A DNA stretch of 63,525 bases, filler included, from Hyphochytrium catenoides (taxonomy: Eukaryota > Protista > Hyphochytriomycota), in NCBI GenBank assembly GCA_900088475.1. It is 8 parts of 8 records of this genome, joined end to end, with 100 filler letters (N's around TTAATTAATTAA, not from the genome) between each part and the next. Parts side by side here need not be neighbours in the genome. Positions count along the whole stretch, not along the records: positions 18,305 to 37,880 come from FLMG01000874.1; 7 more parts are not named here. One strand, written 5' to 3'. How positions within the stretch are numbered: the first letter of the stretch is position 1; each line of letters begins with the position of its first letter. The position numbers and the translations under genes are program-made. The notes beneath the pieces are model-generated. The model was not told the origin of the DNA, did not search any database, and was given only the letters and a program-made list of their open reading frames with translations. Positions 18,305 to 37,880 of this stretch are shown piece after piece.

Positions 18305-18322
18305 AAAGAGGGAGACAGAGAG

Positions 18323-18375
<53 letters not shown>

Positions 18376-18780
18376 CAGAGAGAGACAGAGGGAGAGAGAG
18401 ACAGAGAGAGACAGAGGGAGAGAGAGACAGAGAGACAGAGTGAGAGACAAGAGAGAGAAGGGAGAGAAGGGAGAGAAGGGAGAGAGAGGCAGTCTCTATC
18501 TTTGTAGAGATGAGTAGTATTCATCATTGTCAGGCATGGCGGAGCAGGAAGATATAGAGCAGCTTGTAGGTCGGCACTCTACCCAGGAAGCGCGCAGACG
18601 GAGCTCTCCAGGATTGTCAAGAAGTATAGAGATCAAGTCTCCGTGAAGTGAAGAAGACACATCGACCGTAAGAAGCCCTTGAAGGCAGTTCATCTTAATA
18701 GCCTTTAAAGAGATCTGTAAGCTTACAAGGGTAAAAGTCAGTATGACCTAGATCTGAAGGCAGACAGTGCATGAGAAGCA

Positions 18781-21700
18781 ATGAACGGCTGGCTGGACAA
18801 GGTGGGACAGGAAGATGTGCTCAAGAAGTGGAGGCGGCGATGGTTTGTCCTTGATGCCGATACCGCCCAGCTGTATTATTATAAGGTAGGGAACAAGATT
18901 GGTTAGACGTCCGGGCTCACTCTCTTTCCAGCTATGCGAGTCTGTCCCTTTCTCCGGCCTCTCTCCCTTGATCATTGCACCGCCTTAGTACTCTCATGCG
19001 ATCTCCTCCCCTCTCTCGTTGCCCACGTCGAGCAACCTCCCAATCCTTTTGCTTGCAAGGGAGGAAGCATTTGAACCGCCTCTCTGGTTCTCCCTGCTTC
19101 TCATCGTCGAACCGCACCCTCAGCCTCACATGCCCTCCTCAGGACGCCACTAGGACTCACCTGAAGGGAAATGTGGACGTAACTGGAGCGTTGGTCTTTC
19201 TTCCTAATCTTGAAAGAGGGAAGAGTGCCTACATCCGTGCAAGGCCAGCCTGCTTTGGCATAACGGAGGCATCAGGAGCCGTGGTCAGTGGCCTCTTCTG
19301 TCTGTCTGCCTGGCCGTCTCGTTCTTTTCTTCTTCTGTAACCTGGTTCTGTGTCTTCTGTCGCGTTGTAGCTCCCTTCTATTGTCCCCGTTGTCGAGGGG
19401 ATTTCGTTGGCTTGGGGTTGATCTCGGCTAACGGTTTGCCTACGTTTTAGACCATCTTCTTAGATGCTTCTGATGAGGAACAGGGCCGCAGGTGGATGCA
19501 GGCAGTGCAGAAGGTGGCGGAGGCTGGTCCTAGGGCTTCCGCGAATGCAGGCAAAGCAGGACGAAAGAACTTTCATTTCTCTCCTAAAGTTACTGCGGTG
19601 GAAGTTGGAGAAGATAGCGTAGCGGTAAGGCCGCTCCTTCTGTCTCATTTCTTCTGTTCTTGCTCTATTCTTTCCTCTCTCTCTCTTTTCCTTTTTGCTC
19701 TTCCACCCAGTTAGAAGGGATCCTGACAGGTTACTGCGTGAACAGAGGTATAAGGTTGAATGCCTCGCGCGTGTTGTGAGTAAGGAAGGAGGAAAAACTG
19801 CGAGGAAGTGGGATCTCTGGCGACGTTACTCGGAGTTCAGTGACCTGAACAGGTACGCTTAGTTAGAAAGATTGAGAAGGAGAGAGATTCATGCATTCAG
19901 GATGTATGACAGGTTGAACCGAGATCCTTTATTAGCTGGTTAAGAGGGAAGTAAATGACAAAAGATGAACAGCGGCCGAGGGAGGTACGATAAACGCAAC
20001 AGGGCGTTTACAAGTGCGAATATTTAACGTCGACTTGGTGAGGTGATTGTGCAAGAGTGAGACAGAGGACAACGACATGTAGAATGCCTAACGGAGGATG
20101 GAAGTTTCGAAGTCAAAGCAGTAGGTTACTGAGGGGGCGAGGGAGGCAGTCTGCGACACAGTCCTCACAATAGACTTCAGAGTGTTTTATTGACCAAGCG
20201 CTACAGTGAGAGCACAAGCTCTGACTCTTTTGTTTACGCCAGCAAGCTCTGCCGTGCGCTAGGAGATAGTATGAAGTCCATTACCTTCCCCAGCAAGCAC
20301 CCTCTTGGTGGAATCATGGGCAAGAAGAATGACAGTGCTCTATTAGAGAGAAGACTGGTTGAGTTGGACGCGTTTCTAAGACAGGTGAAGACTATGCTAT
20401 CTCTCTCCTCCATATCTGTTTCTCTTGAAAGACTCTGTCATTGCCTAGCTCTCTTATAACTACTTAGGCCAATGATCCGTGTAGAGTAGCCTAGCTCTCC
20501 ATGCTCTGTCTCCTAAGACCTCTCAACTTGTGGAATTGGAGACTCTGGTCGAGCTTTTTCCTCTCATCAAAGCTCTTCTCCCTCAGACCTTCTACACAGG
20601 CTCCTCCGAGGGCCATTCTCTAAGGACTATCTTGGTTCATCAAACTCCTCCCTCATGGGCTCTACTGCATGTTGCCACCGTCCCTCATCGGTCTATCTCT
20701 GTAGGTCTGTTCCATCAGAAATGTTGCCAACTTTCTCGAGGAGAACTGCAACAGAGACTTGAAGGTACGCTTTGAGTAGAGTGACAATTATAATAGTGAG
20801 GCAAGAGTAGCGCGAACTTTAGCGACGACTTGCTGAGCGAAAGCTAAATCACCGATATAGCTGGTAAACTCCTTCTCTAAACTCTCCCAAGTCCCTCTGA
20901 GTACTTAGGCAGCACAGATTTCACGTCCTTTTCCCTCGTGGTTTTCCTTCTCATCCACGACCTTTCAATGTCTCTTTCTCTCAGGCTTTCTTTGACTTTG
21001 ATGCTCAGTATGGAGCAGCTAAAGAAAGAAAGAGACGGAAAACCATCAGCGACAGCGCGGGCCTTACAACTGAAGCGTTAGAAAGAAAGGAGGAGAAAAA
21101 GAAGAAAAAGAAGAAGAAAGGGGGTAGAGAGGAGGCAACGATCAGTCAATCGTTGGAAGGGCTCACTATAGATTCGAGCAAACCCACGAAGAAGAAAAAA
21201 GAAAAGAACAAGAAGGAGCCTTCATCTTCTGCCTCTCCTGCAATGTTGCTTTTGACTAACGGACAAGGGCCTAAGCCCAAGAAAAAGAGGAAGAAAAAGA
21301 AGGATAAAGAGAACGGCGAGCAAATGGTGGAGAGCGCGCCAATTAAGAGTAATAGTACGGAGACCGGGAGTGATGATGACGAGGTCAGGCACTTCCCTTG
21401 TTTATTATTATGCCGTTGGCGTTTCCTACCTCTCGGGCGTCTATTTTTGCTTTTTACTCTCCAGGGTTCGGTCCTTTCCGTAGGGCATTACGTATCTACA
21501 TCCTAAGTACTCCTCACCCACAGGACTGGCAATGCATCCCATCTGCTAAAGAAGATGAGAAGGCTTTACCTCCGCCACCGCCTCCTTTCAGGCCCAGCCC
21601 TTTTGGTGGCCCTGCCATTGGCGCTGGAAGAGGAGATCTCTTAGCAGCGATTAGAAAAGGAGCAGAGCTCAAACCCGCAGAAGGGGTAGGAGCAGGAACA

Positions 21701-22075
21701 CCGGTAAGAGGGGCATGTTTGGAGAAGGAAAGCACCAATAGTGTATTAGCGGCGGCTTTTTGTCATAGACTTAGCCGGGCATGGCTAAAGGTACTGTTTG
21801 CTCTGCTGTCTGTCTCCTACTCTCTCGCCCCTTCTCACAGGCGGAGAGGGTTGGCCTTCCTCCTCCTCCTCCTCCTCCAGCCCCAATAGGCAGTCCGGCG
21901 ATGGGGTAAGGCCACATTCTCTGAGTACGAAAGGTTTGGAAAAGAGTTGACCTTTTATTGTGTCATGGGCAACAGAATTGGAGACTCTATTGCTGCAGCC
22001 ATATCAGCGCGACGCGAGACCATCAACGTCCTTGACGATTCGGACACAGAAGACGATGAAGGCTGGTCCGATTAA
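18781..22075 (+). CDS. PH-PX-basic-polyproline-WH2-central-acidic (WCA) protein; putative Arp2/3 nucleation-promoting factor; 10 exons
   Basis: PH: MNGWLDKVGQEDVLKKWRRRWFVLD...LYYYK...HLKGNVDV...FLDASDEEQGRRWMQAV. PX: WDLWRRYSEFSDLNSKL...FPSKHP...LLERRLVELDAFL. Poly-Lys tracts, then PPPPPP. WH2: GRGDLLAAIRKGAELKPA. C/A: IGDSIAAAISARRETINVLDDSDTEDDEGWSD*. All joins are GT-AG and in frame. Confidence 0.85.
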
Positions 22076-22199
22076 ATAGTACTTGCCACAATAACGAGAC
22101 ACATAGAGAGAGCCGCCAAGGACCAATAAGCACAACCGGCTAGCGTTCTACACCAGCACCCTCACTTTGCTCTCTAAGAAGCCTGAGGTAAACGGCCTT

Positions 22200-25100
22200 T
22201 CAATGGTGACCAGAGCTAGGGCGAGGAGAGGTCTTGGTGGACTTTGTAAACATTGGCTTCAAGTACTTCTGATCGAGCTGTGAGAGAAGGCGAGTCAGAC
22301 CAAATGGGAGGACTTAGTGCGTCGGAGGAAAGAGAGGGCAGCGGAGGTTGCTAAAGCAGACATACACAGGAGAAGCAGATGATAGAGAGGACGTGCTCTC
22401 TAAACGACCCACCTTAGCCCAGATGCTCTGGACATTTGAAGCGTCGAAGTTGTCCATGCTTTGCCGTCGATAGTTCTCTTCAAAGTTCTCTTTGTCTTGC
22501 CTTTTCAGCATCTCGTGGCCCTTGTTCCCTTCATGAACTCGTTTTCTGGGCTCCTGAGGCCGATACAAATGGTTTAATAGATGAGCTGTGCTGTCCAGGG
22601 TATTGAGTGTTTCCTCCTCTGTTTCCCGAACCTCCGACATCCCTTCACCTCACTTGCATTACCTTGACTACCTTATTTTAACCCAGGTTTCAACAGTCTA
22701 TACACGCTGCAACGTCGAACTTACCCTAACTTCCTCTTCTTCGTCGTCCCTGAGTCCAAACTCTCCATCTTCCCGACCGTCAAGGAGTCCATCGTCGGGA
22801 TCATAATTTTCATCGTGAGTAGTCTGTAGACAGATCGTACAGGGAGATTAGAGTCACACAGTGTAAAGGGAAACGTAACCCATGAGTTGATTACAAGAGA
22901 CCAGACACATATTCGCGCCCCTTGCCCAAGCTCAAAAGTGGGAAGGTAGGCAAGGCGACAGATTCTGACAGAGTTGAACCAAAGGGATTTGCAACTATAT
23001 GGAAGAGTGAAAGTGGTGGTATAGTGACTGCTACTTACCCTCATACCAGCCCAAGATAGCAGTGGCTCTGTTAGACCACCGCCAACCACAGTCGTTAGAA
23101 CGCAAACTGGATATTTCGTCGGTTAGAAGGCGATGACAGGGCAGAAACATGGTGGTCGGGGCGAAAATTGAGCGATGCGTAACGAGATATCCTTACCAGA
23201 GAGAGTAGTGGAGACGTAGAGGTCTCGGTGCTTCCCAGGCATTGTCCTGAGTTCAAACTCAGTTAAATCGCGGTTAAAAAGTCCCCTTCACTAACTTCGC
23301 CAACTTTCCCCACAGCCTCGCCAAGTTGCTTACTGTGAAAGAGCGAAAGCCATTGCTCCGCGTAAGCCGCAGAACCAGATGACAAGTTGCATGTTTCGAG
23401 GGATAAGAAGGTTGGGTCGCCTATGTGAGGGTTAAGGCGTTCAGTGACCGTCCACCCTTCTTGACTTTCATTACTCATTTCTACTCTTCGCGCTTGCATT
23501 CATTCCTAACCTCACGTGCACAGCAACTCTTCTCAAAAACTAACAAATTGACTAAGCTACTCGTTCAGCTGTCGCTATCTTACTCGCTCTTCTATGATAG
23601 TCCATGTAAGGACATCTTTCCTTTCCACGTCATTCTACGCCCGTCCCGCCATTCGTCAAGCTCAGCCTTCCCCTTTTGGTACTCCTACCTGAGGTTGACA
23701 ATCCAACAGATGGAATAAACGCTAACCGCCCGAGCAATGAGGCACGCAAGAACGGACTACAATCAGCCAGGGCAGCGTTAAAAAGGCCGTTGAAGAGGGA
23801 TAAATAGGAAGAGGATAAGAAGTGGGACGCGGCACAATAAGTGAGGACTTACCACCACAATGAAGATGATACTCCACCGGTCAAACTGGCCTAACAGTTA
23901 AGCTTGTTCAATACTGATTCTTACTTCAACTTACTGTTTCCCTCTCGTACCTGTGAAGAAGCACATGCCCATGTATATAAACACAAAGAACTCTGCCAGT
24001 CTTGCGAAGCTCTTGAAGATATATTCCGTCGTCACCTAATCATGGAGCATTTACATATAAGCACCCAGGGCATGCACAACCTTGACGGTAACCATGACTG
24101 CTAGGGAAGACCGGATAGAGACAGGTTTGGATAGATGAGCTTCAAAGAGAAGAGGTGCTCGCTACGGGGCCATGAGAGAAGAGACTGACAGGCGGAAAAG
24201 CGATTATTCCTCTTACCTCAGAAGTGTGAGATAAGTTGTTGCAGTTATAGTGCTTCATAATGATCCCGCAGAAGAAGAGAGACATAATACCTAAATAAAC
24301 GTGACTGAGATCGGCGCTCTGAATGCTCTTTTCCCTCGCTCTTTCGCTTTAGTTAGCTGTTCATCAGGGTAGTCGGACATATATATATATGCCTAATTTG
24401 GAGGTTATATACCTGAGAGGTGAAGGACTTCGGCGACCGCGTAGGAAGCGTATGCATAAAGAAGAAGAAGAGAAATCTCGAACTCTGGATAGTCTCTCAT
24501 ATCGGTGTGCTTACACATGTAAGCACAACCTAGTCTGCGGGTATAAACAGAGTGAAGAGGAATTGGCTATGTCACCATTGGCACTTTTGAAAGACCCATC
24601 TGTTGACATGTAAGGCAGTAAACAGCGACGATAGAAAGAGAGCAGGTGGTCTGTGGAAGGTATAATCTGTAATGAGTTCCACGTAGAATAGACTCAAGTC
24701 AGGAAGAGAACTCCGCAGAGAGAGTATTTCGTGCTTAGGTCGACACTTACCCTACCGCGACACCTACAAACACGGACAGCAAAGATACGCCGGCGAAGTC
24801 GATCATCGCGTTGAATATGGTCCATCGCGTGAACGCTTCCCCAGATACGTAGGACTAGGGCAAAAGAAGTGGATAAAGGAAGAGGACACGAAGCATTGAT
24901 CAAATAGGCGCACTAGGGTGAGCCGCGTTCAGAAGGAGGTGACGAAAAATATGGGAGAAGGAAACAGTCTAAACCATTGGTGATGGAGAGGAGCAGCTAT
25001 TACTGTCAACCCCGACACGGGTTAGCTGAAGGGACCGACCAGAAAAAACTAGAGGAAGAACGGCAAGCGAGTATTTCTTGCATTACAATCTCTGTCTCGT

Positions 25101-26562
25101 GGTCATTATTGATCTGCATTCACTTTAACCCGCTTTCGAAATCAGTTACCCCTTACCCTGTTTACAGAAGGGAAGACATGCGCCAGTAGTGGACTGACCT
25201 TCATAAACGTGTTAAATAGTCCAATGCAAACGGCATCGTTTAGAACGCTCTCGCCAAAGACTAATGTATAAAGCAAAGGGTTGCAGCCGAGATCTGCTGA
25301 CCCCATGATGGAGAGAGTTGCTACCGGATCAACCTGATTGAAGCGAAAAGAAAGGCAGACTGAGAAAACCACCAAGAGATGCTTGAGAACGCATTAAAGA
25401 TGAGAAAACTCTGAAAGCCAGTATGACACACAACCCACACAAGGCAACGCCCTCCCTGAGAACGCTCGAGAGACTTCTTACCGAAGAGATTAGTGCTCCA
25501 AAGAGAAGGGCTTCAAGGGGGCTTGACGTGTCAATGTTGATAAGTCCCAAGTTTGCCACTCCGTAGACAATGAAGGCTGTTCCGAACGTCATAATCACGG
25601 TGCCGAAGACAGCGAACAATACTATGGGTCTTATGATGAATCGAGACAAACGAGAGAGATTTGAAAAGCAGAAGTGAGCTCTAAAAAGATCCCACCGTCT
25701 GCTCAGAGAGCATTAAAAGACATCATGACTCACCCGAAGTTATCGAAGAATCGTTGCTAGAAGGTTCACAGAGCACAAACAAGAAAACTTCGTGAGTCCT
25801 CGGCAGGTGACTGAACACTGGGTAGCGACAAGACATGTACAAAACGGACTAACAGAAAGAGGCACAGTGCAAGGAAGGGAAGAAGATCGAGCAGATGTAA
25901 TCAATTCTATGAAGATGCAGTTGCTCACCTGGCTCATCGTGTACCCTGCTTCTAAGATGATGGGAGGAAGGAGGAGAAAGAAGAAGATCTCTGACTGGAG
26001 ATGCCAGTAACCATTCAAGCGAGGACGACAAGGCCACACGGAGGCCATATGGGAGCGAAGGGGAGTCGCAGGAGCAAGGTGAGAGAAGGAGGATGGGTAA
26101 ATACGGCTTGAACTCTACCTGAAAGCTAAGAAACTCGAGTTCCTGCTGGCTAGGATAGAAGAGTTTGGCACAAAGTCCCACAATGAATCCGATCTGTATG
26201 AAAATGAGAATGTCAGAAAAGGAAACGATACTTTTTTCCAGCTAAAGGTTCGGTAGTGGTGAGATGATGACAGAGCGCGTACCAACATCGCGGCTGCCGA
26301 CTCGGGTAGATAGTAGTACCGATATCGCTTTACCAGGTAAGCGACAAAGGTGCACAAGCCTATTAGCACCACCTAGGGAACATACTCAGGTGAGGCAGAA
26401 TATCGCTAAAACGCTTCACGGTGCCTCTCACCAGAAGGAGAGTGTTCAGTGCGCCAAACTCGTGGGCCAGTTCCCCCGTATGGAGGCCTACGCAATCGCT
26501 CAAATCAGACGGGATAGGTTGTCACTTTCACAGAGGCAGGACTTACGATTCACTTCCACCAT
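22200..26562 (-). CDS. Na+/H+ exchanger (CPA1 family, NHE8/NHX-like), multi-exon
   Basis: YYLPESAAAML, FFFLLLPPIILEAGY, FFDNFG, LLFGALISSVDPVATLSI, LVFGESVLNDAV, LSGIMSLFFCGIIMKHY, WFCGLRGAMAFALS, GGGLTEPLL and C-terminal LDQKYLKPMF. ATG at 26562, TGA at 22200. Confidence 0.93.
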
Positions 26563-27877
26563 GTTTCTCCAGTGTAGGATGTACGGGAGACTTTATAGTC
26601 AACCGAGACCAGTTGGCTTTTGACGCCAATTCTAAGGCTCCGTACTACAAGTCCACGCCTGTTTTGCACGTTCCATTTGGTCCAGTTTCCTTTCCAGAGA
26701 GAGCGACAAAGACTTCCTCCCCTTCAATACGCAAGCACGTGCGCCTTTCGCGACGACTACTACTTCAGTCCCACTAGCCGAATGCGACGTCCTAAGAAGA
26801 CACTGAAGCCCTCAAACCGTGATGTCCTGATCATGCAGAGTGCTTCCTTCACGTAACAAACTTAATGAATCTCTGTGATGATCGATGAAGCTGCAGCTTT
26901 CTTGAAATCTTCAGAAATTGCCCCCAGACCGTCAGAACACCAAGACAGAAAACCCTTTGAAGCCTCTGAAAGAACAGAAGAAAGGAGAACTGATTCTGCG
27001 GTTGGGTCCATAGACGATAACCAATTACATAACTATAACATAATCTGTTCGTCGGTTACTACTCCCTGAACCATTCTCCGGATTCAGAATAAGAAGCGGT
27101 ATAGCTCATGATCTGGCGGCGGCTGCGTGCCGATTAGGGTTGGGCCGTTACTGAGTGTACACTAGAGCCTGGGTGATGATGGCTGAGGGTCCACGGCCCA
27201 GGATGTTCTACGACCATAGAAGAAGGCGTTTGCTTCGCTTTCGCCAAAGTCCCATCGCTCCTTCTCCTCATGCTCGTCACCTGTCATCAGCCTTGTCCAT
27301 CCTTCCCCTTCACGTCTCCACTCTTCTCTCGTCCCCTCTCTCTCTCTCTCTCTCTCTNNNNNNNNNNNNNNNNNNNNNNNNNNNNNNNNNNNNNNNNNGC
27401 CAGTCCGGGGATTGTCACACTTCCATAAGATGGGATGAGAGCCAGCAATTCCTATGCCACAGGGTTATTTATGCGGTCCGTCTATGAGGGAGCGGGGATG
27501 ATCATGCGCGCTTGCCCTGACCATTTTTCCTCACCGTTCATCGCCAAGCTGTCATGTTGATCGCTTGATTCATACTTGTACACTCTCACTCCCTCTTCGC
27601 GTCAACCTTCTGAAAAGTCGAGAGCAGTCTCTAGCTGCTATATGTAGCGTTCATCGGGCAAAGAGTCTCTTTCTTCCTTTCTAGCTTGTACCTTCCTTCG
27701 GTCGTTCTCGCCCAACAACTCTAGTCTACCGCTTCTCCCTCTAAAGCGCCTAGTGAACGTCGCACCAGAATGGAAGGCTGACGTCTCTTTAGAAGCGGGG
27801 AACGACATACGAAATACCTCGACCATAGCCAGACAACTCAAACGGGTAACTGGCACGCAAAAAAAGACAGAGGAAAC

Positions 27878-30414
27878 ATGAATAAGTACAGGGCGATCAA
27901 GGCGCTCGGCGATGGTGCCTTCGGACAGGTGACACTGGCATTGAACAGCCAGACAGAGGAGATGGTCGCAATAAAGACGATGAAGAGGAAGTTCGCGACG
28001 TGGGACGAGTGCCTCAAACTGAAGGAGCTCAGGTCCCTTAAGGCGCTAACCCATCAAAATATAGTTAAGCTAAAAGAGGTAAATAAGTCCTTCGCATTGT
28101 CCCTGCTAACTTCTCCTTTGTATGTCTCTATACTTCGAGCTATCCCTGTCTAAGTAGGCCTCTCGCACTCTCGCTCTCTTTGTCTCACCCGTAGACTGTC
28201 TTCGCACACATATGGTCCTTCTCTTCTTTCCATCTTTCAAAGTTGGCTCTTCTTCTCTATGGTCTCATGAAGCCTCCGATCTCTGGCCTCATGAACCCTC
28301 CGATTTCTGGCCTTGCCTTTTGTCTCGCTGCCTCCGCATCTTTATTCTCTTCCCCTTGGTCCCACCTTCTTTCCATGGAAATGTGTTGTGTCTCCTTGCA
28401 GTGCCCTCTGTATGTCCCACACTCTACATCCCTTACACTGTTTTCTCTCTCTCTCTCTCTGGTCCATCCCTCCGTCGCTTGCAGGTGATAAGGGAAGAAC
28501 AAGTGCTTTACTTCGTCTTCGAATATTGCGAGCTAAACCTCTTCAAGTTCATCAGAGAAAGCCAGAAGTTAGACACACGGATAACGGAGAGTCAGATAAG
28601 GAATATTATGCAGCAGGTGTGACCCACTTTCTCTTCTCCCGCCATCCATTACTACTTTCATCCCCCTTTCACGCTGCCTGACTCTCCGTGATAAACTCAA
28701 GCCAAGAGAAGTTTCACCTGCTCTGCGTCGCTCACCTCCGTGCCCTCAGCCCTCACAGCAGCCACAAGTTGTCACCAATAAATCATTTGTCTCCTGTTAG
28801 CCTGCGCTCTAGCTAGGCTCTCTTTTTTCACTTTCCATTATCCTCCGCTAGCTCATTTGCAGTAGTGTTTCTCGGTCTCAACCTTCGTCTCCCTCTCTTT
28901 CTCCTCCAGCTCTTTTCCGGGATAGCGTACACACATAAGCACGGCTTCTTTCACCGAGATATCAAACCGGAAAATCTCTTGATGACTGCAGATCTGCAAG
29001 TGAAGCTCGCAGATTTTGGTTTGGCTCGAGAGATTCGCTCTCGCCCTCCCTACACGGAGTACGTAGCTACTCGCTGGTACCGAGCTCCAGAGCTTTTGCT
29101 AAAAAGCTCGAGCTATAACTCTCCTGTGGACATGTGGGCATGCGGCTGCATTATGGCTGAGCTCTACAACGGTAAAACGCTATTTCCCGGTAAGGAACAC
29201 TCTTATGAGCATAGAAAAGTGACCTGAAGGTATACTAACTAAAAGAGGAACGCTAGAGGGAAAGAGCTCGAGAAATGAGAAGAGAGGACTATGCTACGAA
29301 CCAGATGCCTCATACGCTGACCTACTTGTCACCTTCTGTCACTCATTTTACACATGATAACGTCCCATTCCTCTTCTACTTTTTGCTGCATTTAAAGGCA
29401 CGAGCGAAGGTGATCAGATTCACAAGATCTGCCAGGTATTGGGCACTCCCACTAAGCAGAACTGGCCAGAGGGACTGGCCCTGGCAACACAGATGCAGTT
29501 CCGGTAAATGGCCTAGCATCAGTCGCCTCGCTCTGTCCACTTTCAATCTCTTTTTATCTTCATACCTTATCCCCTACATTTCAATGGTCGAGAAAAGAGT
29601 TGTCTCTTCTTTGGTTGGTCCATTACCAAGAACTCTTTTACACTGAGCTAGAGATCCCTTAACTAACTGCTGACTCTTCTCTGGGGCCGGGACTATTTAT
29701 CTCAATCGGCGCATCCCAAGACTCCCGCTATGTACCCCTATGCCGATGAGCCAGGTTGTCCCTTCTGCGTCTTATGAGGCTCAAATCCTCATCCGAGACC
29801 TCCTTCAGTACGATCCAAGCAAAAGACCAACCGCTACGCAATGCTTTAAGTATGCGTTTTTCTCCCAAGCTCAGGCAGAAGAGGAGGAAGACCGAGTGAT
29901 GGCCTGTGAAGCCAAGGAGAAAGAGAAAGGGGAAGAGGGTAGCGTGGAGGCCAATCATGAAAGTGGGAGAGAAGATAAATGGTATCGAAGAGAGAACAAA
30001 GAGCGAGGAGCGCAGTGGACCACAGCCGATAATGGCCAAGAGAGAGACAGGGTGGCTGAGCCCAAGATAATAGTCAAGAGAATGAGCAGCTTTTGCAAAG
30101 GAGAAGATGATGGGGAGAGGAGGGGTCTCATCACAAAAAGACTGTCACAAGCCGAGGAGGAGTTAGTGCTAGGAGAAGAGGATAAAGCTCCGGTCCTGAG
30201 AAGCAGAAGCTCTAGCAAGGCTTTGGAGCCAACTCTGGATGAAGACAAAGCCGAGGACGAGGATCTGGACGAGAAGGTGTCCCGAGGAAGTGCTCCAGAG
30301 AGAGAGAGAGGAGTCCCAGGCAGTTGTTATAGACACTCCACCGCAATGCTAGCTAAGAAGGGACAGAGTGAATCAGAGCTACTAGATTCCTTGCTGCAAG
30401 AGGTGACGCTTTAG
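27878..30414 (+). CDS. MAK/ICK(CILK1)/MOK-like RCK-family Ser/Thr kinase, 5 exons
   Basis: MNKY...[71 protein letters not shown] (TEY activation loop), followed by a charged disordered tail. Confidence 0.93.
28258..28315. repeat. 24-bp tandem repeat (about 2.3 copies) in kinase intron 1
   Basis: tgg(t/c)ctcatgaa(g/c)cctccgat(c/t)tc repeated. Confidence 0.8.
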
Positions 30415-30824
30415 GTGGAGACGGAGGGAAAAAAATTGTATCAGGAGGGAAGTAGATCAGTCAAGCAACGGCAAGAGGAGGAAGGAAGAGGGCGAGATTC
30501 TGGATTGGGTAATCTAACGCTATCGCTTACAATAACTTAATATTTCCTATGCGAGACGACCGGGATGACCTCCTCCTAACTGTCCTTCAACCCTGTCAGC
30601 CATCGAATGGTCACCAACGCGCGCCGCTTGAGTGGAAGCCCGGAGAGGGACGGAGTAAGTGTACCATGCACCAGCATTGAGGACTAGGGCTATAAGAGGT
30701 GACCTCCCTCTACCTCCTTGCCCTGTCCGAGTGCTGGTCGTCGCTCTGGCCATACCTTTAGTATAAAAGACCTAGGAGCTCCCTGTTCTCCCTACATGCG
30801 GTAAAGAGGAGCAAGGGTAGCTGT

Positions 30825-32765
30825 TCAATCTTCGTCCTCGCCTTCCTCATCGTCAGACTCGTAGGTATCGTCATTCTCATCCATCTCTCCTAATACGCCG
30901 ATCTTTCCGCTTGCCTCCAATAAAGTCTCTATCTCAGCTACGCCCCCAGATGAAATAGAGTTCCCGTTAAGGTTCAAAGTCTTCAGAGAAGACTTCTCCC
31001 TAACTCCCTGGACAATGGTCAAAGCACCTTTCCTTGTTATGTCGTTTGTGGCAAGATTCAGGACGGCGAGGAGAGGGAGAGAGGGTGAGGCGAGGAACTT
31101 CGACAGCTCCATTGCCCCCTTAGATCCAAACTCATTCTCCTCTACTTCCAGAGTTTCCAGTTTGCCCTTAGTCGAAATGCATTTTCCTAATGCCACCGCA
31201 GACTCTACGCTCAACTCATTGCTGGAGAGGTCGAGGAAAGAGAGAAGAGGCGCAGAGGTTATCAGCGAGGCGCAAATCTCCTTCAACCCGTCGTCTCCAA
31301 GAGAGCAATCCCGCAAGTTTAGGTGTGTCAGCTGAGCTTGAGCTGCACGTTCCAAGAGTGAGGGTAGCGAGATAAGGAAGAAGAAGGGTTAGAGAATGTT
31401 GCGCAAATTGTTGCTTGAAGAAGAGAGTGCAGAAAGACAAGGGCAGGAGCAGCATTATCAATAGAGGATAAACCATGTCAAGAACTACAAGGCAAGGATG
31501 AGCCGCGATTATACTGGCCAGATGACAAGAGCTGGAATATGCGAACAGCAGTGACTACCGGCTCCAAGTGACCGCCAGAAAAAAAAACGCTATATAACCC
31601 TTGGCAAGGGCAACAACAGTTGGTAGACCAAGGACGTAGAGCTGAAATTTCAACGAGATGGGGAGACAGACTGAAGCAACGAAAACCATGAAAGAAAGAA
31701 GAGCTGCTTGTGTACCTGAAAGAGCCTTCGCCAGTTCTTTCGCTCCCTCAATGCCAAAAGTGTTGTCACTTAGATCCAAGCGCACTAGAGATTTTAGACT
31801 GGCCATCCCCTGGGCGAAAAGAGCGCAACCAGTCCTTCCACAGCGAGTTGCGGAGAAGCGGAGGTCCGTGAGTAGGGGAGAAAGAGGAAGAAGCTTTCCG
31901 ATGGCTGCTCCACCTTCATCGCCGCTCATGTTGTTATAGAAATGGAAAGCCTTTAGTTTCGTGGGCTCTTTTTCTCCCCTAAAGGACAAAATCTCCACAA
32001 TATACTGAGCTGCCTCTCCGGACATGCCATTGTTGCAGAAGAAGATCCTCTCCAGTACCGCTTGTTCCTTAAGAAGTGAGAGACAGGCTCTTACCCCCTT
32101 CTTTCCAAGGGCGTTATCACTCAGGTCTATCTCTGTGAACTGGTGTGAAGAAAGGGAAGTGCAGAGAGTTTCCAAGACCTTCAGTGCCTCGTCCTCTGGC
32201 CTTCCTGCAATCATATCTGCAAGATCGGCCTCTTTCAATCCCTGTAATTCTCCTAGAAGGCCGGCGACAATTGCAGCTCCTTTCTCAGTGTAACTCTTAT
32301 TAGACAGAGAGACCTTTTCATATACTCGTTGCGAGGAAGAGATGAACGGCTGAATGAGAGCTCGGGCCCGATTCTCATCAACGACTTCTCGAGATCCGCC
32401 GAAAGCAAGTACTGGGAGACCAAGAGAGTGTGATTCAAGCGAGAGTAAGATAGACGTAAGAATCAAGCTTAATAAAACTGACAAAGTAACAAGAAGTATC
32501 ACGGAGAAAGAGCTCTTGCTTGCACTGTTTCCCCCTTAAACGGCGTCAGAAGGAAGAAAGTCAAACAAGCACATACTACCCGAGGTCTCTACAAGTAGGA
32601 ATAAAAAGATGAGAATGGGAGCATTTACTCCAGAGAAAGGCTCTACCTGACGGTGCAGCACTGTCGCCAATAGAAACTGCCTTGCTGAACGCCTCTGCCA
32701 AATCAACTTCGTCCTTTGTAACTGAGGGCTCCTCAGGTTCCTCCTCCGTCTCTTCTTCTTCCTCC

Positions 32766-32798
<33 letters not shown>

Positions 32799-34523
32799 CC
32801 AGCGTTCTCGTCATTCTCCTCCAACGAGGATAGTACGTCCAACTTGTTGGCTTTCTTTAGAACCTTCTGTATCTCCTCCACTCCAGCTGCAGAGATACAG
32901 TTGCCATCAATTTGCAGGTGCATAAGCCCGGGCTTGCCTGCAACTGCTTGCGCCAGAGCGATGGCCCCGCTAGCCATTATCTCATTAGTTCCGACATTGA
33001 GAAGAATGAGAGATAACAAGCACTCCTCCTTAGACAGAAAGGAAGAAAGGACCTTTGCTCCCTTGGAGGCGAGCTCATTTTCCTCCAGGAGGATCTGCTC
33101 CAAGTGCTTCTTTTCTCTCACACACTCGCCTAGAGCAGCCATTGATCTGTAGGTCAACTCGTTGCTGGATAAATCAAGAAAGGAGAGGTTGGGGGCACTT
33201 TTCTTCAACGAAGAGAGAACAATCTTGGCCCCTTTGTCTCCTAAGTCCGTGTCACGAAGGTTAAGCGAGACCAAGTGCACCTAGAGAGTGACGAAGAGCG
33301 AAGACGGTTAATGAGAGCAAAATGAGGGAGGCGGAGAGAGAGGAAGGACAGAGAAGAAAATGCGAGGCCAGAAGAGCTATGGCGCTATGCAAAAGCTGTC
33401 CATTTTTTTGCCAGCCCTACTGCTTAACATGGTTGAAAACCTGGACGCGCTTACGCGCTGAGCACTAAACGGAACAAAGAAGAGGAGACTATAAAACAGC
33501 AAGAAAGAGAGAAAAGAGAGCACTGCTTCAAGCTCCAATAAAAGAACCACACCTGCTGGCCGAGGGCACCCGCTAGCATCGTCGCTCCTTCAACGCCAAA
33601 AGTGTTGTCACTCAGATCCAGCTTCCTTAGCAGCTTCAGAGACTTAACCCCTTCTGCGAAAAGGGTGCTTCCCTTTCTCCCGCATCTGGTGGCCGAGAAT
33701 CTTAGCTCTTGAAGATTAGGAGAGTGCTTCAGAAGTTGTCCCAGAGCTATGCCGCCGCCATCTCCGCTCATGTTGTTATAAAAGTGAAAAGTCTCTAGTG
33801 CTGTCGACTTTCCTGCGCCCCTGAAGAGAAGAAGCTCAACAATGTACTTTGCTGCCTCGGCTGACATTCCATTGTTGCAGAAGAAGAGGTGTTTCAGCTT
33901 CTCCTGTCTTTCTAGCACGCCCAGACAAGCTCTAGCGCCTTTCTCTCCTAAGGCATTGTCGCTGAGGTCCACTCTTTCAAGCTGGTTGTTCTGAAGTGCT
34001 TGACAAATAGAGTGAAGCACCTGCAGAGCTTCTGCCTCCGGAAGCGAAGCAATCATATCAGCGAGATCAACATCTTTTACGCCCTTCAGCTGACAGAGAT
34101 AGTCAGCAATGACAGCAGCTGCGGGCGCAGTGTAGCATTTGTTGGACAGTGATACCTAACAGGAGAAGAGCAAGGGTAAGCCTGTGTGAGATAAGTGTGA
34201 AGGGGAAGTCATAGCGACTACCCTAAGGACGACTGAGGACCAGGGTATGCCAAGAATTTGTATAGAAGAGAGGGGGCTACATAGAAAAGCAATCGGGACA
34301 AGGGCATCCAGCCGAGACTTAGGCCATCAAAGTGAGGAAGGGAGGAGGGAACGGCGACACTCGTCCCCCTGTTAAGGCTGTTAGAATCAAATAACAAACA
34401 TACCGAGTCATACTTGGCTTCAGAGATCGGAAGAAGCGTCTCAATCATGCTTTGCGCTTTTTCCTTCGACACTCTCTCTCTTCCACCCGGGAGAGAAAGC
34501 CGCGACATATTCTCTCCAGTCAT
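30825..34523 (-). CDS. RanGAP: Ran GTPase-activating protein with two tandem RanGAP LRR + acidic-tail modules, modelled as a single ~856-aa gene (exons 34523-34404, 34155-33553, 33280-32647, 32411-31716, 31342-30825)
   Basis: Both halves carry VSLSNKxY, DLADMIA..PE.EAL, LSDNALG.KG, FFCNNGMS, FHFYNNMSGD, LRFSATR, LDLSDNTFG, LNLRD..LGD and a D/E-rich tail. The exon lengths sum to 2571 nt (857 codons) with no internal stop. Confidence 0.85.
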
Positions 34524-35108
34524 CGTAACACTTAGAGACCCAGCTTCTCTCTCCCTCTGACTCGCTTGAACCAGGGCTCCGCTCTGCTAACAACACTGCA
34601 GAGCTTCGGGTTCTGAGCTCTTTCTGCGGACGATGAAGGACTGCACGTGGCTGGTGAGCGCTGTAGGAAAAGCAGCAATAGAGTTCCTGTTGGACAGTGG
34701 CTTGAGAAGTTTGTATGAGAACAGGAGGGAAAGCGGGGTTACGAACCACAAAACCATAGAGAAAGACAGAGTGGGAAAGAGATACGTCTGAGGGGGGGTT
34801 GCAGGTGGGTTAAGGAGGGTTTAGAGTTGGAGATGTGCAAAATAGATATAACACTAGATACCATACCTGACATACAGGTGCAATCGAAAGACAGAGGAGG
34901 AAGGAGATCCATGCCGATCTGGCTCTCACTAATTACGCCAATAAAGGGATAGCAGAGAGATATTCTCGTTATTACTCTATGGCGATATGCGTTACACTAT
35001 CTCTATACGATATCTTTCTGCATGTCTTTCCCAGCCAAGTAGAAAGGCGACCATCCTAGGTCATCCATCATCGTTACTGATAAGCCAGATCGTTATCGCT
35101 TCATTTCT

Positions 35109-35983
35109 ATGGGATCAAAGGGTCAGAACGCTGTCCGGACGGTGATTGAGCTCTCCGGCGGCTGTCAGGCCAAACGGCAACAGTCAGATTATTGCACAGG
35201 CTTGAGGCCTAGCGGCAGGATGACTGCTTGGTGTTTAGAGAAGTTATATAGGTTGCAAGACCATGAAGATAGACAACAAGCTATGTGTGAGAAAGCGACT
35301 GACATAGGTTGTGGTTGCCCCCAAGCATGACGAGGGACCTCACTCTCCCTTCCTCAAGTCACATATTTTGTTTGGACAGTCTCCGGGAGGGGGTAAAAGG
35401 GACGGTTCACAAGATTTGAACTAGCACTCACTTCCTAGCAACCCATAGAGATGGCTAAAAGCATCAGCTTCCAGCTATCTTGTTGTCTAGCCAGGAGTAC
35501 CCGTCTTGTCTTCTACTATATGGCTTATCTCCCCTTTTCCGTATGCTGCAGAGCTTTCCAGCAGATATGTTAACGTGCAAAATCGACCTTGACGTCCTAC
35601 CGCTAGAGAAACTCCCAAAGAAAATGCGGTTCATACACAAACGTAGAACGGAGGATGTCGTCTCACGAAAAGGGAAGGATCCGGGGAGGTTTGATCAAAG
35701 AGGTTGTGCTATCAACTCCCCTCCATCTCTTGACAACTCTGGGACAGAAGAATGTGCATCAGATGCGCCAAACAGGTACCTGAAATCATCGTCCTGCCCT
35801 TGCCGGGATGCGGAGAAGATGGAGCTACAGGCCGCGACGTTGCTGACCTAGCCTGACCATGAAGAGATACGCATTACCCAAGTATTCTGGAAGGAGGTTG
35901 AAACGGAGGAGCCTGCGAAGGGGATGCGTCTTGTCTGCCTTGGTGAAAGAGCTCCGCGAAGCTCTGAGGCATTGCTGAGATGA
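35109..35983 (+). CDS. Hypothetical spliced protein, family not recognised
   Basis: Exon-like segments SFPADMLTCKIDLDVLPLEKLPKKMRFIHKRR / RMCIRCAKQ / PDHEEIRITQVFWKEVETEE can be joined in frame by short GT-AG introns. The start is uncertain. Confidence 0.4.
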
Positions 35984-36164
35984 GATATACCTTGCGCTTC
36001 AGCGGTCATAGGGGCACTCATGGTCGTCTTGTTGGCCGTCCACCGGGGCCGTGCATAAGAGATGGGGGCATGACTTTTCTTATAACCAGCGGAGGAGAGT
36101 TGAGCTCCCTCAACAAAGTCTTCTGCTCACGCCTCTTTTTCCTGCAACATGTAATCCTCCCATT

Positions 36165-37064
36165 TCACGTAGAAGTCGAATCTGCTTGGTTTCCTCTCTT
36201 TACGGCCTTGTAGATAACTAGGGCGACTGGGTTAAAGTTCTGATCGCATTCTTCCCTATCCACGAGACTCATCACGAAGTACTGTGCCATTTCTGCAAGG
36301 AACATCTCCATCACATTGCTGTCACGGAGGCTGACAGCCAAGAAGACGATGGTCTTGGGCCCACAGAACTGCAGGAGCGTTTGCACTAGTGGAGTTATCA
36401 AGCTCTCTGTGTAGACACAGTCAGCAGCCACGATGAAATCAGGGAAGTAGCAAGGAGCAACCTCTTCTCCATACTTTGATTCGCTCTTTTCTTCTTCTCC
36501 CCGAGATAAGAAGAAGTTCATTATCTCCCCGATGTCGTTCTCCTCTCCCCACGTGATCTCCATGCTTTTGACAGAAGGCTTACAGTCATTGAGCTGCATG
36601 TTTTGGTTCAGAAGAGGAAGCATAGCTTCCATGTCGGTGAGTAGTACTCTTTCGATGTTCAGGCTGCGATGGAGGTAGATCCCTAAGAGCCCACAGCCTG
36701 AGCCCAACTCCAAAACCGTAGTCTCCATAGAGAGGCCAAGCCTTTTCCTCTGTTTGACTAGATAGGCTCCAAGAACAATTGAGCCGTCCCACACTGCTGC
36801 TCCAGTCATGCCGGGAATGGACTGCAGGTCGCGGTTCTGTTTGATGTGCAGGGGTGGAGCTCCTGGCAGGTCAACGCTAAAAACCCCGGCGTTCTGTCTG
36901 CAGAATACGTTTTGCACAATGCCTTCAGCGCCTCGTGCAACATAGAGATTGAACACTTCTTCCTCTGCCCATTCTTGGGCCAGTCGAGCATTCATATGCC
37001 TATTTCCCGAGCAATTTTCTTCTTCTTTCCCGTTCAGTGCTTGCTGTGCTTCCGGTTCTTCCAT
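36165..37064 (-). CDS. Class I SAM-dependent protein-lysine methyltransferase, METTL21/Methyltransf_16 family, intronless
   Basis: TGAAVWDGSIVL, VLELGSGCGLLG (motif I), VLLTD, ITWGE and DFIVAADCVY (DxxY motif) in a 299-aa ORF. Confidence 0.9.
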   Translation of the reverse strand: MEEPEAQQALNGKEEENCSGNRHMNARLAQEWAEEEVFNLYVARGAEGIVQNVFCRQNAGVFSVDLPGAPPLHIKQNRDLQSIPGMTGAAVWDGSIVLGAYLVKQRKRLGLSMETTVLELGSGCGLLGIYLHRSLNIERVLLTDMEAMLPLLNQNMQLNDCKPSVKSMEITWGEENDIGEIMNFFLSRGEEEKSESKYGEEVAPCYFPDFIVAADCVYTESLITPLVQTLLQFCGPKTIVFLAVSLRDSNVMEMFLAEMAQYFVMSLVDREECDQNFNPVALVIYKAVKRGNQADSTST

Positions 37065-37726
37065 AGCCCGTGAATGAAGCTCTGCCCTTGAGCAGTACGA
37101 AGTGCAGTGTTATTTTCCCCTCATGCGCTGTAAAGTGCAGCCGTTTGCCACTTCAACGCGGCGGTCAGCTCCACGTCCGGCACTGATGAGCAGTCCTTAG
37201 ACTTGGGCCACCGTGGAGCTTGCGAAAGATGGCTCTGCACTGATATAGCGTCAATGGCAGTTGCTCTCAAGCAACGCCGACCGATGAGGAGGAGGAGCTG
37301 ACGAAGCCGCTGATGGACAATTGAAGAACAAGAGGGAGGGAGAAAGGACAAGTACTCCCATCGCCCTCACTTCTTCGCCTCATCTTCCATCAGCTCTTCT
37401 TACTGATCAGCTCATCTGGGCTCATCTGGCCCACAGCTCTGCTGATCGCACAACAGGAAGGTGGCTTGTGGCTTGGTCGAACTGTATGGAGGAAGCTGTC
37501 CAGCTAGGGACAGAATGATAGGTAGCCGCTAACCGATCCTAGGAGTCAAGACCGCTAACGGTTATCCTTGACTTAGCTGTTCCGGTAACATCGACGACAG
37601 TGGGTGAGGTATAGGAGGAAGCATGACTTGATGGAATACCGACCCCCCTCCTACATCGGGGATATATCCGTTTCATTCCTACTCATTTCTTCTCCCATGT
37701 GTCCTTTCGACTCTCTCTCTCATTCT

Positions 37727-37757
<31 letters not shown>

Positions 37758-37774
37758 ATCTCTATCTCTCTCTT

Positions 37775-37805
<31 letters not shown>

Positions 37806-37808
37806 ATT

Positions 37809-37839
<31 letters not shown>

Positions 37840-37880
37840 ATCTCTATCTCTCTCTTTCTCTCTCTCTCTCTCTCTTCTCT

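Follow-up and report, generated by a model that had tools for sequence, protein, structure and literature searches.

Prediction of a class I Arp2/3 nucleation-promoting factor with a PH-PX head in Hyphochytrium catenoides

The stretch of DNA analysed in this study, hereafter the window, comprises 63,525 nucleotides, filler included, from the genome of Hyphochytrium catenoides (assembly GCA_900088475.1), and the genome analysis covered the 19.6-kb piece at its positions 18305–37880 (FLMG01000874.1). On the plus strand of this piece, positions 18781–22075 hold a 10-exon gene model, whose 490-residue product carries predicted PH and PX domains in its N-terminal half and a WH2-connector-acidic (WCA) tail at its C-terminus. 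As predicted from its sequence, the product most likely represents a class I Arp2/3 nucleation-promoting factor that is specific to its lineage, and we give a probability of about 0.6 to the reading that one expressed gene encodes such a factor with an unusual head. From the N- to the C-terminus, the predicted order is PH, PX, a basic linker, polyproline, WH2, a second polyproline, the C (connector) helix and an acidic end with a tryptophan. This order had been proposed in a first-pass annotation of the DNA and found support exon by exon.

When joined, the short plus-strand frames between 18781 and 22075 form one open frame of 490 codons with a single terminal stop, which runs from the ATG at 18781 to the TAA at 22073–22075. 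An in-frame TGA is located three codons 5' of this ATG. The nine introns between the ten exons (E1–E10) all begin with GT and end with AG. They range from 70 to 390 nt, with a mean of approximately 200 nt, and their 3' ends are mostly pyrimidine-rich. Retention of any single intron introduces a stop or a frameshift, which is true for all nine. Similar to these introns, the homology-anchored intron of a neighbouring RanGAP-like gene (approximately 31343–31715) is also of the GT..AG type, and its donor starts with GTAC, as do those of introns 4 and 6. The join between E3 and E4 is the weakest. Its acceptor at 19746 is the fifth AG past the pyrimidine tract, and none of the other four preserves the frame. 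This acceptor is plausible because a CTGAC branch-like site, read from the sequence at approximately 19722–19727, lies just upstream. The frame is likewise preserved by acceptors further downstream, at 19755 and 19785, which shorten the PX domain. The 10-exon model of the first-pass annotation was thus recovered in full, together with all the motifs that it had quoted: RRYSEF at residues 163–168, the WH2 core at 415–428, the C helix at 459–474 and the acidic end with W488.

A proline-rich region, WH2, C and an acidic segment with tryptophan, in this order at the very C-terminus, define the class I activators of Arp2/3. The predicted protein's C-terminal portion was found to possess one WH2 motif, a C motif, an acidic Trp-bearing C-terminus and proline-rich sequence before WH2. 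For this and all other assignments, the domain, PDB and Atlas searches were run exon by exon, which is less sensitive than a full-length scan, and the Pfam scan reported matches with E-values up to 10. E8 (21524–21703) contains the first polyproline, PPPPPP (residues 392–397; 21569–21586), which is followed by the WH2 motif (residues 409–429; 21620–21682). The WH2 motif matched its Pfam family with 28.4 bits against a gathering cutoff of 23.1 (E = 1.2e-6) and aligned to the N-WASP WH2 repeats of 3m3n (E = 0.0013). Moreover, the Atlas neighbours of E8 were WH2 clusters from WIPF1, WHAMM and WASL. E9 (residues 437–458; 21841–21905) contains the second polyproline (residues 443–449; 21859–21879) between WH2 and C, and E10 (21976–22075) contains the C helix, the acidic A region and the stop codon.

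The C helix (residues 459–474; 21977–22024) was assigned by a regular-expression fit to the general C-domain pattern, which consists of three V, I, L or M residues spaced by three, a K/R doublet and a closing hydrophobic residue (Kollmar, 2012; PMC3298513). In the predicted protein, these positions are occupied by three isoleucines spaced by three residues, an RR doublet and a closing isoleucine. The A region (residues 475–490; 22025–22075) possesses eight D/E among its last 15 residues, and Trp488 (22064–22066) is at position −3, three residues from the end and followed by the stop codon. The C pattern is weak on its own, as it occurred in 13% of shuffles of the protein. Its combination with an acidic Trp-bearing C-terminus occurred in 5 of 200,000 shuffles.

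The head of the predicted protein is of a different kind from those by which the WASP family is sorted. E1 (residues 1–35; 18781–18885) covers PH strands 1–3, including the basic K7...K16-W-R18 motif of strands 1–2. E1 alone, 35 residues long, scored 24.8 bits against Pfam PH (E = 3.3e-5), versus a cutoff of 25.1. E1 also gave 55 PDB matches, nearly all of which were PH domains, with PEPP1, TBC1D2, cytohesin/GRP1 and Akt at the top. E2 (residues 36–82; 19143–19283) lies in frame between the PH exons E1 and E3 and is assigned to the middle of the domain. On its own E2 had no relevant Pfam match, and its Atlas matches, TamB-like look-alikes in beta-strand sequence, were all sub-threshold and were discarded. 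E3 (58 amino acid residues; 19451–19624) contains the end of PH, a linker and the start of PX. Its first part (residues 83–108; 19451–19528) can be read from the sequence as the final strand of PH together with its C-terminal helix, in which Trp97 is a further PH feature, and gave no hidden Markov model (HMM) match alone. Its last part (from approximately residue 126; 19580–19624) probably forms the first PX strand, given its position relative to E4.

E4 (residues 141–176; 19746–19852) covers PX strands 2–3 with RRYSEF and matched positions 4–21 of the Pfam PX profile with 15 bits (E = 0.036). This score is under the cutoff because the exon holds only a fragment of the domain. The best PDB match of E4 was the PX domain of SNX15 (E = 0.77). 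E5 (residues 176–223; 20243–20384) would form the core of PX and includes the lysine of FPSK and the arginine of ERR. No HMM matched E5 and the PDB sequence search gave nothing useful. In the Atlas, a comparison by language-model features, PX accounted for 99 of the 100 best named clusters for E5, with a top score of 0.91 and 186 shared features. The C-terminal PX helices are assigned to E6 (residues 224–243; 20705–20764) from its in-frame position, and the domain would end in E7 (residues 244–376; 20985–21383). All residues of the R-Y...K...R lipid-binding motif are present in the PX region, and the R-[Y/F]...K...R motif is cited for PX proteins that bind phosphatidylinositol 3-phosphate (PI3P; PMC5597322). 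Together, these results support the prediction of a PH domain at residues 1–108 and of a PX domain from the end of E3 to the start of E7. The remainder of E7 is a Lys-rich, low-complexity linker with four polybasic runs (residues 258–262, 281–288, 312–315 and 342–349) and an acidic patch at its end.

No exon had a Pfam match to the WH1, PBD, WHD, WAHD, IMD or WHAMM/JMY families at E-values up to 10. Because these head domains match no exon, the predicted protein is, by defining heads, not a WASP, WAWH, WAVE, WASH, WAML or WHAMM. WHAMM/JMY proteins are recognized by a WMD head, a coiled-coil in the centre and two to three WH2 motifs, whereas the predicted protein has one WH2 and a Lys-rich, low-complexity middle region.

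Sequence variation at the locus was assessed with three genomic runs of the same organism, which cover it with collinear contigs. At least 18 exonic variants were found among approximately 40 variants listed in 3.7 kb, and 20 further differences lie outside this list. In the frame of the gene model, 12 of the 18 listed exonic variants were synonymous, compared with 2–3 of 18 in each of the other frames and a chance expectation of approximately 22–27% (P = 7e-5 to 5e-4). The model frame is thus under selection. Among the variants listed, the non-synonymous changes fell in a PH loop (codon 60), in the linker between PH and PX and in the Lys-rich linker, with three in E7. The one variant listed in the WH2 exon E8 was synonymous, as were the two listed in E10, at 22009 in the C helix and at 22042 in the A region. 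The three variants in intron 7 would be at codon positions 1, 2 and 2 if they were read in the frame of E8; intron 7 therefore fits non-coding sequence.

Alleles differ in where the protein starts. In the genomic runs, a GA insertion after 18772, within a short GA repeat, places an ATG at 18771 in frame, adds MREA before the PH domain and extends the product to 494 residues. In the allele of the window, the ATG at 18771 opens an overlapping upstream frame of 27 codons. It was also observed that variant density between 18600 and 22300 is very high relative to the genomic runs and that the runs differ among themselves, which suggests high heterozygosity or polymorphism in the organism.

If the protein functions as predicted, PX with its R-Y...K...R residues and PH with its basic strand 1–2 motif would read 3-phosphoinositides. 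Together with the four polybasic runs, PH and PX would keep the protein at membranes rich in these lipids, whether of endosomes, phagosomes or autophagosomes. Profilin-actin would be brought in by the two polyproline runs and an actin monomer supplied by WH2. Arp2/3 would be bound and activated by the C helix and the acidic Trp tail, so that branched actin would be built on that membrane. Because no GTPase-binding module is present, control would probably be exerted by lipid-driven recruitment and clustering. We speculate that the basic linker may mask the acidic tail in the cytosol. A broader version of this reading is tentative, and we place it somewhat under even odds. In this version, the protein would represent an undescribed branch of the WASP superfamily, possibly restricted to pseudofungi or to these and other stramenopiles, in which WCA is joined directly to a PH-PX head that acts as a coincidence detector of 3-phosphoinositides. 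Lipid identity alone would then control branched-actin nucleation on endosomes, phagosomes or autophagosomes, in the absence of a Rho GTPase or a regulatory complex. The logic of WHAMM would have been invented independently, in a lineage that is said to have lost WASP and to retain only one WASH or WAVE.

Several observations weigh against a class I nucleation-promoting factor encoded by one expressed gene. No RNA run is listed for the locus, so the exon joins are without RNA support; the genomic runs show no joints there, and the acceptor of E4 is not the first AG past its pyrimidine tract. The anchor of WH2 reads LKPA and not LKKT/V, and the C-A exon E10 has no sequence match in the PDB. WH2 and C are separated by a proline-rich spacer of approximately 30 residues, which is longer than in classic WCA tails. 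Relatives were also not found with single exons. E3, most of which is inter-domain linker, had none among 1.84 billion representatives. The sole match of E3, a protein of 2817 amino acid residues with tandem repeats of approximately 55 residues (P0001), had no aligned stretch and was rejected as a compositional artefact or translated repeat. Against metagenome contigs, E3 and E8 gave pattern matches only, for which tblastn confirmed no relative. E8, queried within a stop-free stretch of 163 amino acid residues, matched nothing in a set of 5.8 billion proteins, in a search whose length window excludes full-length relatives. Finally, the only relatives in the same 5.8-billion set of a lysine methyltransferase encoded on this piece are diatom and metagenome proteins (30–33% identity), and diatoms lack Arp2/3 (PMC3298513).

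Some of these observations would suit a protein that is built as modelled and does not activate Arp2/3. It would be a membrane-anchored recruiter of actin monomers or profilin-actin, similar to WIP/verprolin or to membrane-bound WH2 proteins of the Spire type, and its C-A-like end would be degenerate or repurposed, for example because Arp2/3 was lost or altered. WH2 is the only element with support at a curated threshold, and the missing PDB match of E10, the frequency of the C pattern alone among shuffles and the long spacer are all compatible with such a recruiter, as is the loss of Arp2/3 from some stramenopiles such as diatoms. However, the C motif lies exactly between WH2 and an acidic end whose Trp is at −3, an arrangement that is rare among shuffles, and both listed variants of E10 are synonymous. 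In addition, the nearest named relatives of the RanGAP-like genes on this piece are from oomycetes, which are reported to have WASH. A recruiter that does not activate Arp2/3 is therefore unlikely, though it is the best placed of the alternatives.

Slightly less probable is that the architecture is real and not new, either because an unnamed family with it is present in public proteomes (e.g., those of oomycetes or other stramenopiles in InterPro or EukProt) or because the protein is a very divergent WASH, WAVE or WHAMM. The database queries were single exons, which are too short for finding distant relatives, and WHAMM does have a PX-like head. The predicted N-terminus is a PH domain, however, and none of the known head families matched any exon. 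WHAMM is reported to be metazoa-specific (PMC3298513). A survey of 529 genomes mentions neither PH nor PX domains (Kollmar, 2012; PMC3298513). No PH-PX-WCA protein is described in the literature searched, in line with the first-pass annotation, which had named no such family.

The locus might also yield two products, a PH-PX protein ending in or after E7 and a small WH2-C-A product from E8–E10, or isoforms that drop the tail. Neither RNA nor joints in the genomic runs attest to any join, including that of E7 to E8. An ATG-started frame at approximately 21410, within intron 7, runs into E8, and E2, E3, E6, E7 and E8 are all phase 0-0, so that skipping them would preserve the frame. Against this, intron 7 is only 140 nt long, too small for a terminator and a promoter; it starts with a GT donor, is rich in pyrimidines at its 3' end and closes with CAG as acceptor. 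In E7, the last PX helix passes into the linker with no break, and the exon stops at the GT donor; if intron 7 were unspliced, approximately 40 hydrophobic nonsense codons would follow E7 before a stop. Moreover, the variants of intron 7 are distributed as in non-coding sequence and that of E8 is synonymous. Two separate products are thus decidedly improbable. A decaying pseudogene or an assembly chimera of unrelated exons, for which the short contig ending in GA/CT microsatellites and an N gap elsewhere in the piece might be cited, is highly improbable given the collinearity of three genomic runs with no joints, the lack of a stop or frameshift in any exon and the in-frame excess of synonymous variants. 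A single gene for a class I nucleation-promoting factor with a PH-PX head is accordingly the reading that we prefer.

The piece that carries this gene is eukaryotic, with approximately 49% G+C and GA/CT microsatellites at both ends. Long GA/CT dinucleotide arrays are found at 18305–18490, 27336–27398 and 37724–37874, and an internal N gap at 27358–27398 adjoins one of them; these repeats probably broke the assembly. A minus-strand frame of 108 residues (22314–22640), which has no Pfam match, faces the 3' end of the gene in convergent orientation and may belong to a neighbouring gene as one of its exons. The other neighbours are a protein-kinase gene, a tandem pair of RanGAP-like leucine-rich repeat genes on the minus strand and a Methyltransf_16 lysine methyltransferase gene. 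The kinase gene (28200–30414, plus strand) is multi-exon, with a Pkinase match of 131 bits on one exon and a long acidic, low-complexity C-terminal extension, and its product looks like a member of the CDK/MAK group by sequence. The two RanGAP-like genes (30825–34230, minus strand) are each split by one intron and look like a recent tandem duplication. The methyltransferase gene (36165–37064, minus strand) is intronless and encodes 299 amino acid residues. As its matches show, the set of 5.8 billion proteins contains no close relative of this genome, and proteins of the genome itself are absent from the collections searched.

The identities between the RanGAP-like proteins and oomycete RanGAPs were 53–56%, and those with a metagenome protein (P0010), the best RanGAP relative, were 50–63%. 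P0010 is encoded on intron-poor metagenome contigs (L001–L003), whose gene order is not common to the window and in which tblastn with the spliced gene model found nothing. Because of the identity of its RanGAPs to oomycete proteins, the organism groups, as judged by sequence, among the stramenopiles and nearest to oomycetes. It appears to be intron-rich, with an intron density and intron length similar to those reported for H. catenoides. Stramenopiles keep a single WASH or WAVE, and Phytophthora carries WASH; Blastocystis has Arp2/3 and no known WASP-family activator (Kollmar, 2012; PMC3298513).

The heads of WASP-family proteins decide where and when Arp2/3 fires, and the family is sorted by them. 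Each new head, such as those of WASH, WHAMM/JMY, WAML, WAWH and WHIMP, pointed to a new site or a new control of branched actin. If the prediction is true, no simpler route from phosphoinositide identity to actin branching would be known than a canonical PX domain together with PH on a WCA tail. This arrangement would be a one-protein version of the SNX9/N-WASP and PI3P-WHAMM routes of animals. It could explain how Arp2/3 is controlled on internal membranes in stramenopiles, which are reported to have only one WASH or WAVE. The protein is also small and modular, which would make it easy to test in vitro.

Lipid binding and Arp2/3 engagement are combined in other systems in different ways. In the fungal class I myosins (Myo1/Myo3/Myo5), a PH-like lipid-binding TH1 domain and a C-terminal acidic Trp motif that engages Arp2/3 are found in one polypeptide. 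Different from the predicted protein, these are motor proteins with no WH2 of their own, which is supplied by verprolin. In animals, the PX domain of SNX9 is reported to read PI3P along with other phosphoinositides and to control Arp2/3-dependent actin assembly (PMC5674896). SNX9 and N-WASP are, however, two proteins that are linked by an SH3-polyproline contact, whereas one polypeptide would hold both functions here. In Entamoeba histolytica, the PX protein EhSNX1 binds both PI3P and Arp2/3 subunits and is brought to the trogocytic cup (PMC7027479). It differs in that the text of that paper mentions neither WH2 nor an acidic region and does not state the mode of Arp2/3 binding (PMC7027479).

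Among proteins with a WCA output, WAML (WASP and MIM like) of Entamoeba has a head composed of IMD (inverse BAR) and the WAID autoinhibitory domain (Kollmar, 2012), in place of which the H. catenoides protein would have PH and PX. WASH shares the likely endosomal, PI3P-rich site and the same VCA output, and is present in the nearest stramenopile lineage (PMC3298513). WASH differs in its WAHD head, in its work within a five-subunit complex and, in stramenopiles, in its two tandem VCA units (PMC3298513), whereas the H. catenoides protein has a single WCA and no WAHD.

WHAMM is the functional precedent. Its N-terminal WMD is PX-like, possesses the R-[Y/F]...K...R motif, binds PI3P and recruits WCA to autophagosomes (PMC5597322). 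The first-pass annotation, which had counted WHAMM and JMY as proteins with coiled-coil heads, needs amendment for WHAMM in this respect. Its proposal of a lipid-to-Arp2/3 coupling that dispenses with a GTPase module is compatible with the absence of such a module here, whereas the principle, a PI3P-binding head on a WCA tail, is by analogy with WHAMM not new. The logic predicted for the H. catenoides protein is thus the same as that of WHAMM. WHAMM differs, however, in that it has no PH, a head that is only remotely PX-like, a long microtubule-binding coiled-coil and two WH2 motifs, and is reported to be specific to metazoa (PMC3298513). In comparison, the H. catenoides protein is predicted to combine PH with a PX domain that has the canonical RRYSEF, to have a single WH2 and, where WHAMM has its coiled-coil, a disordered Lys-rich linker.

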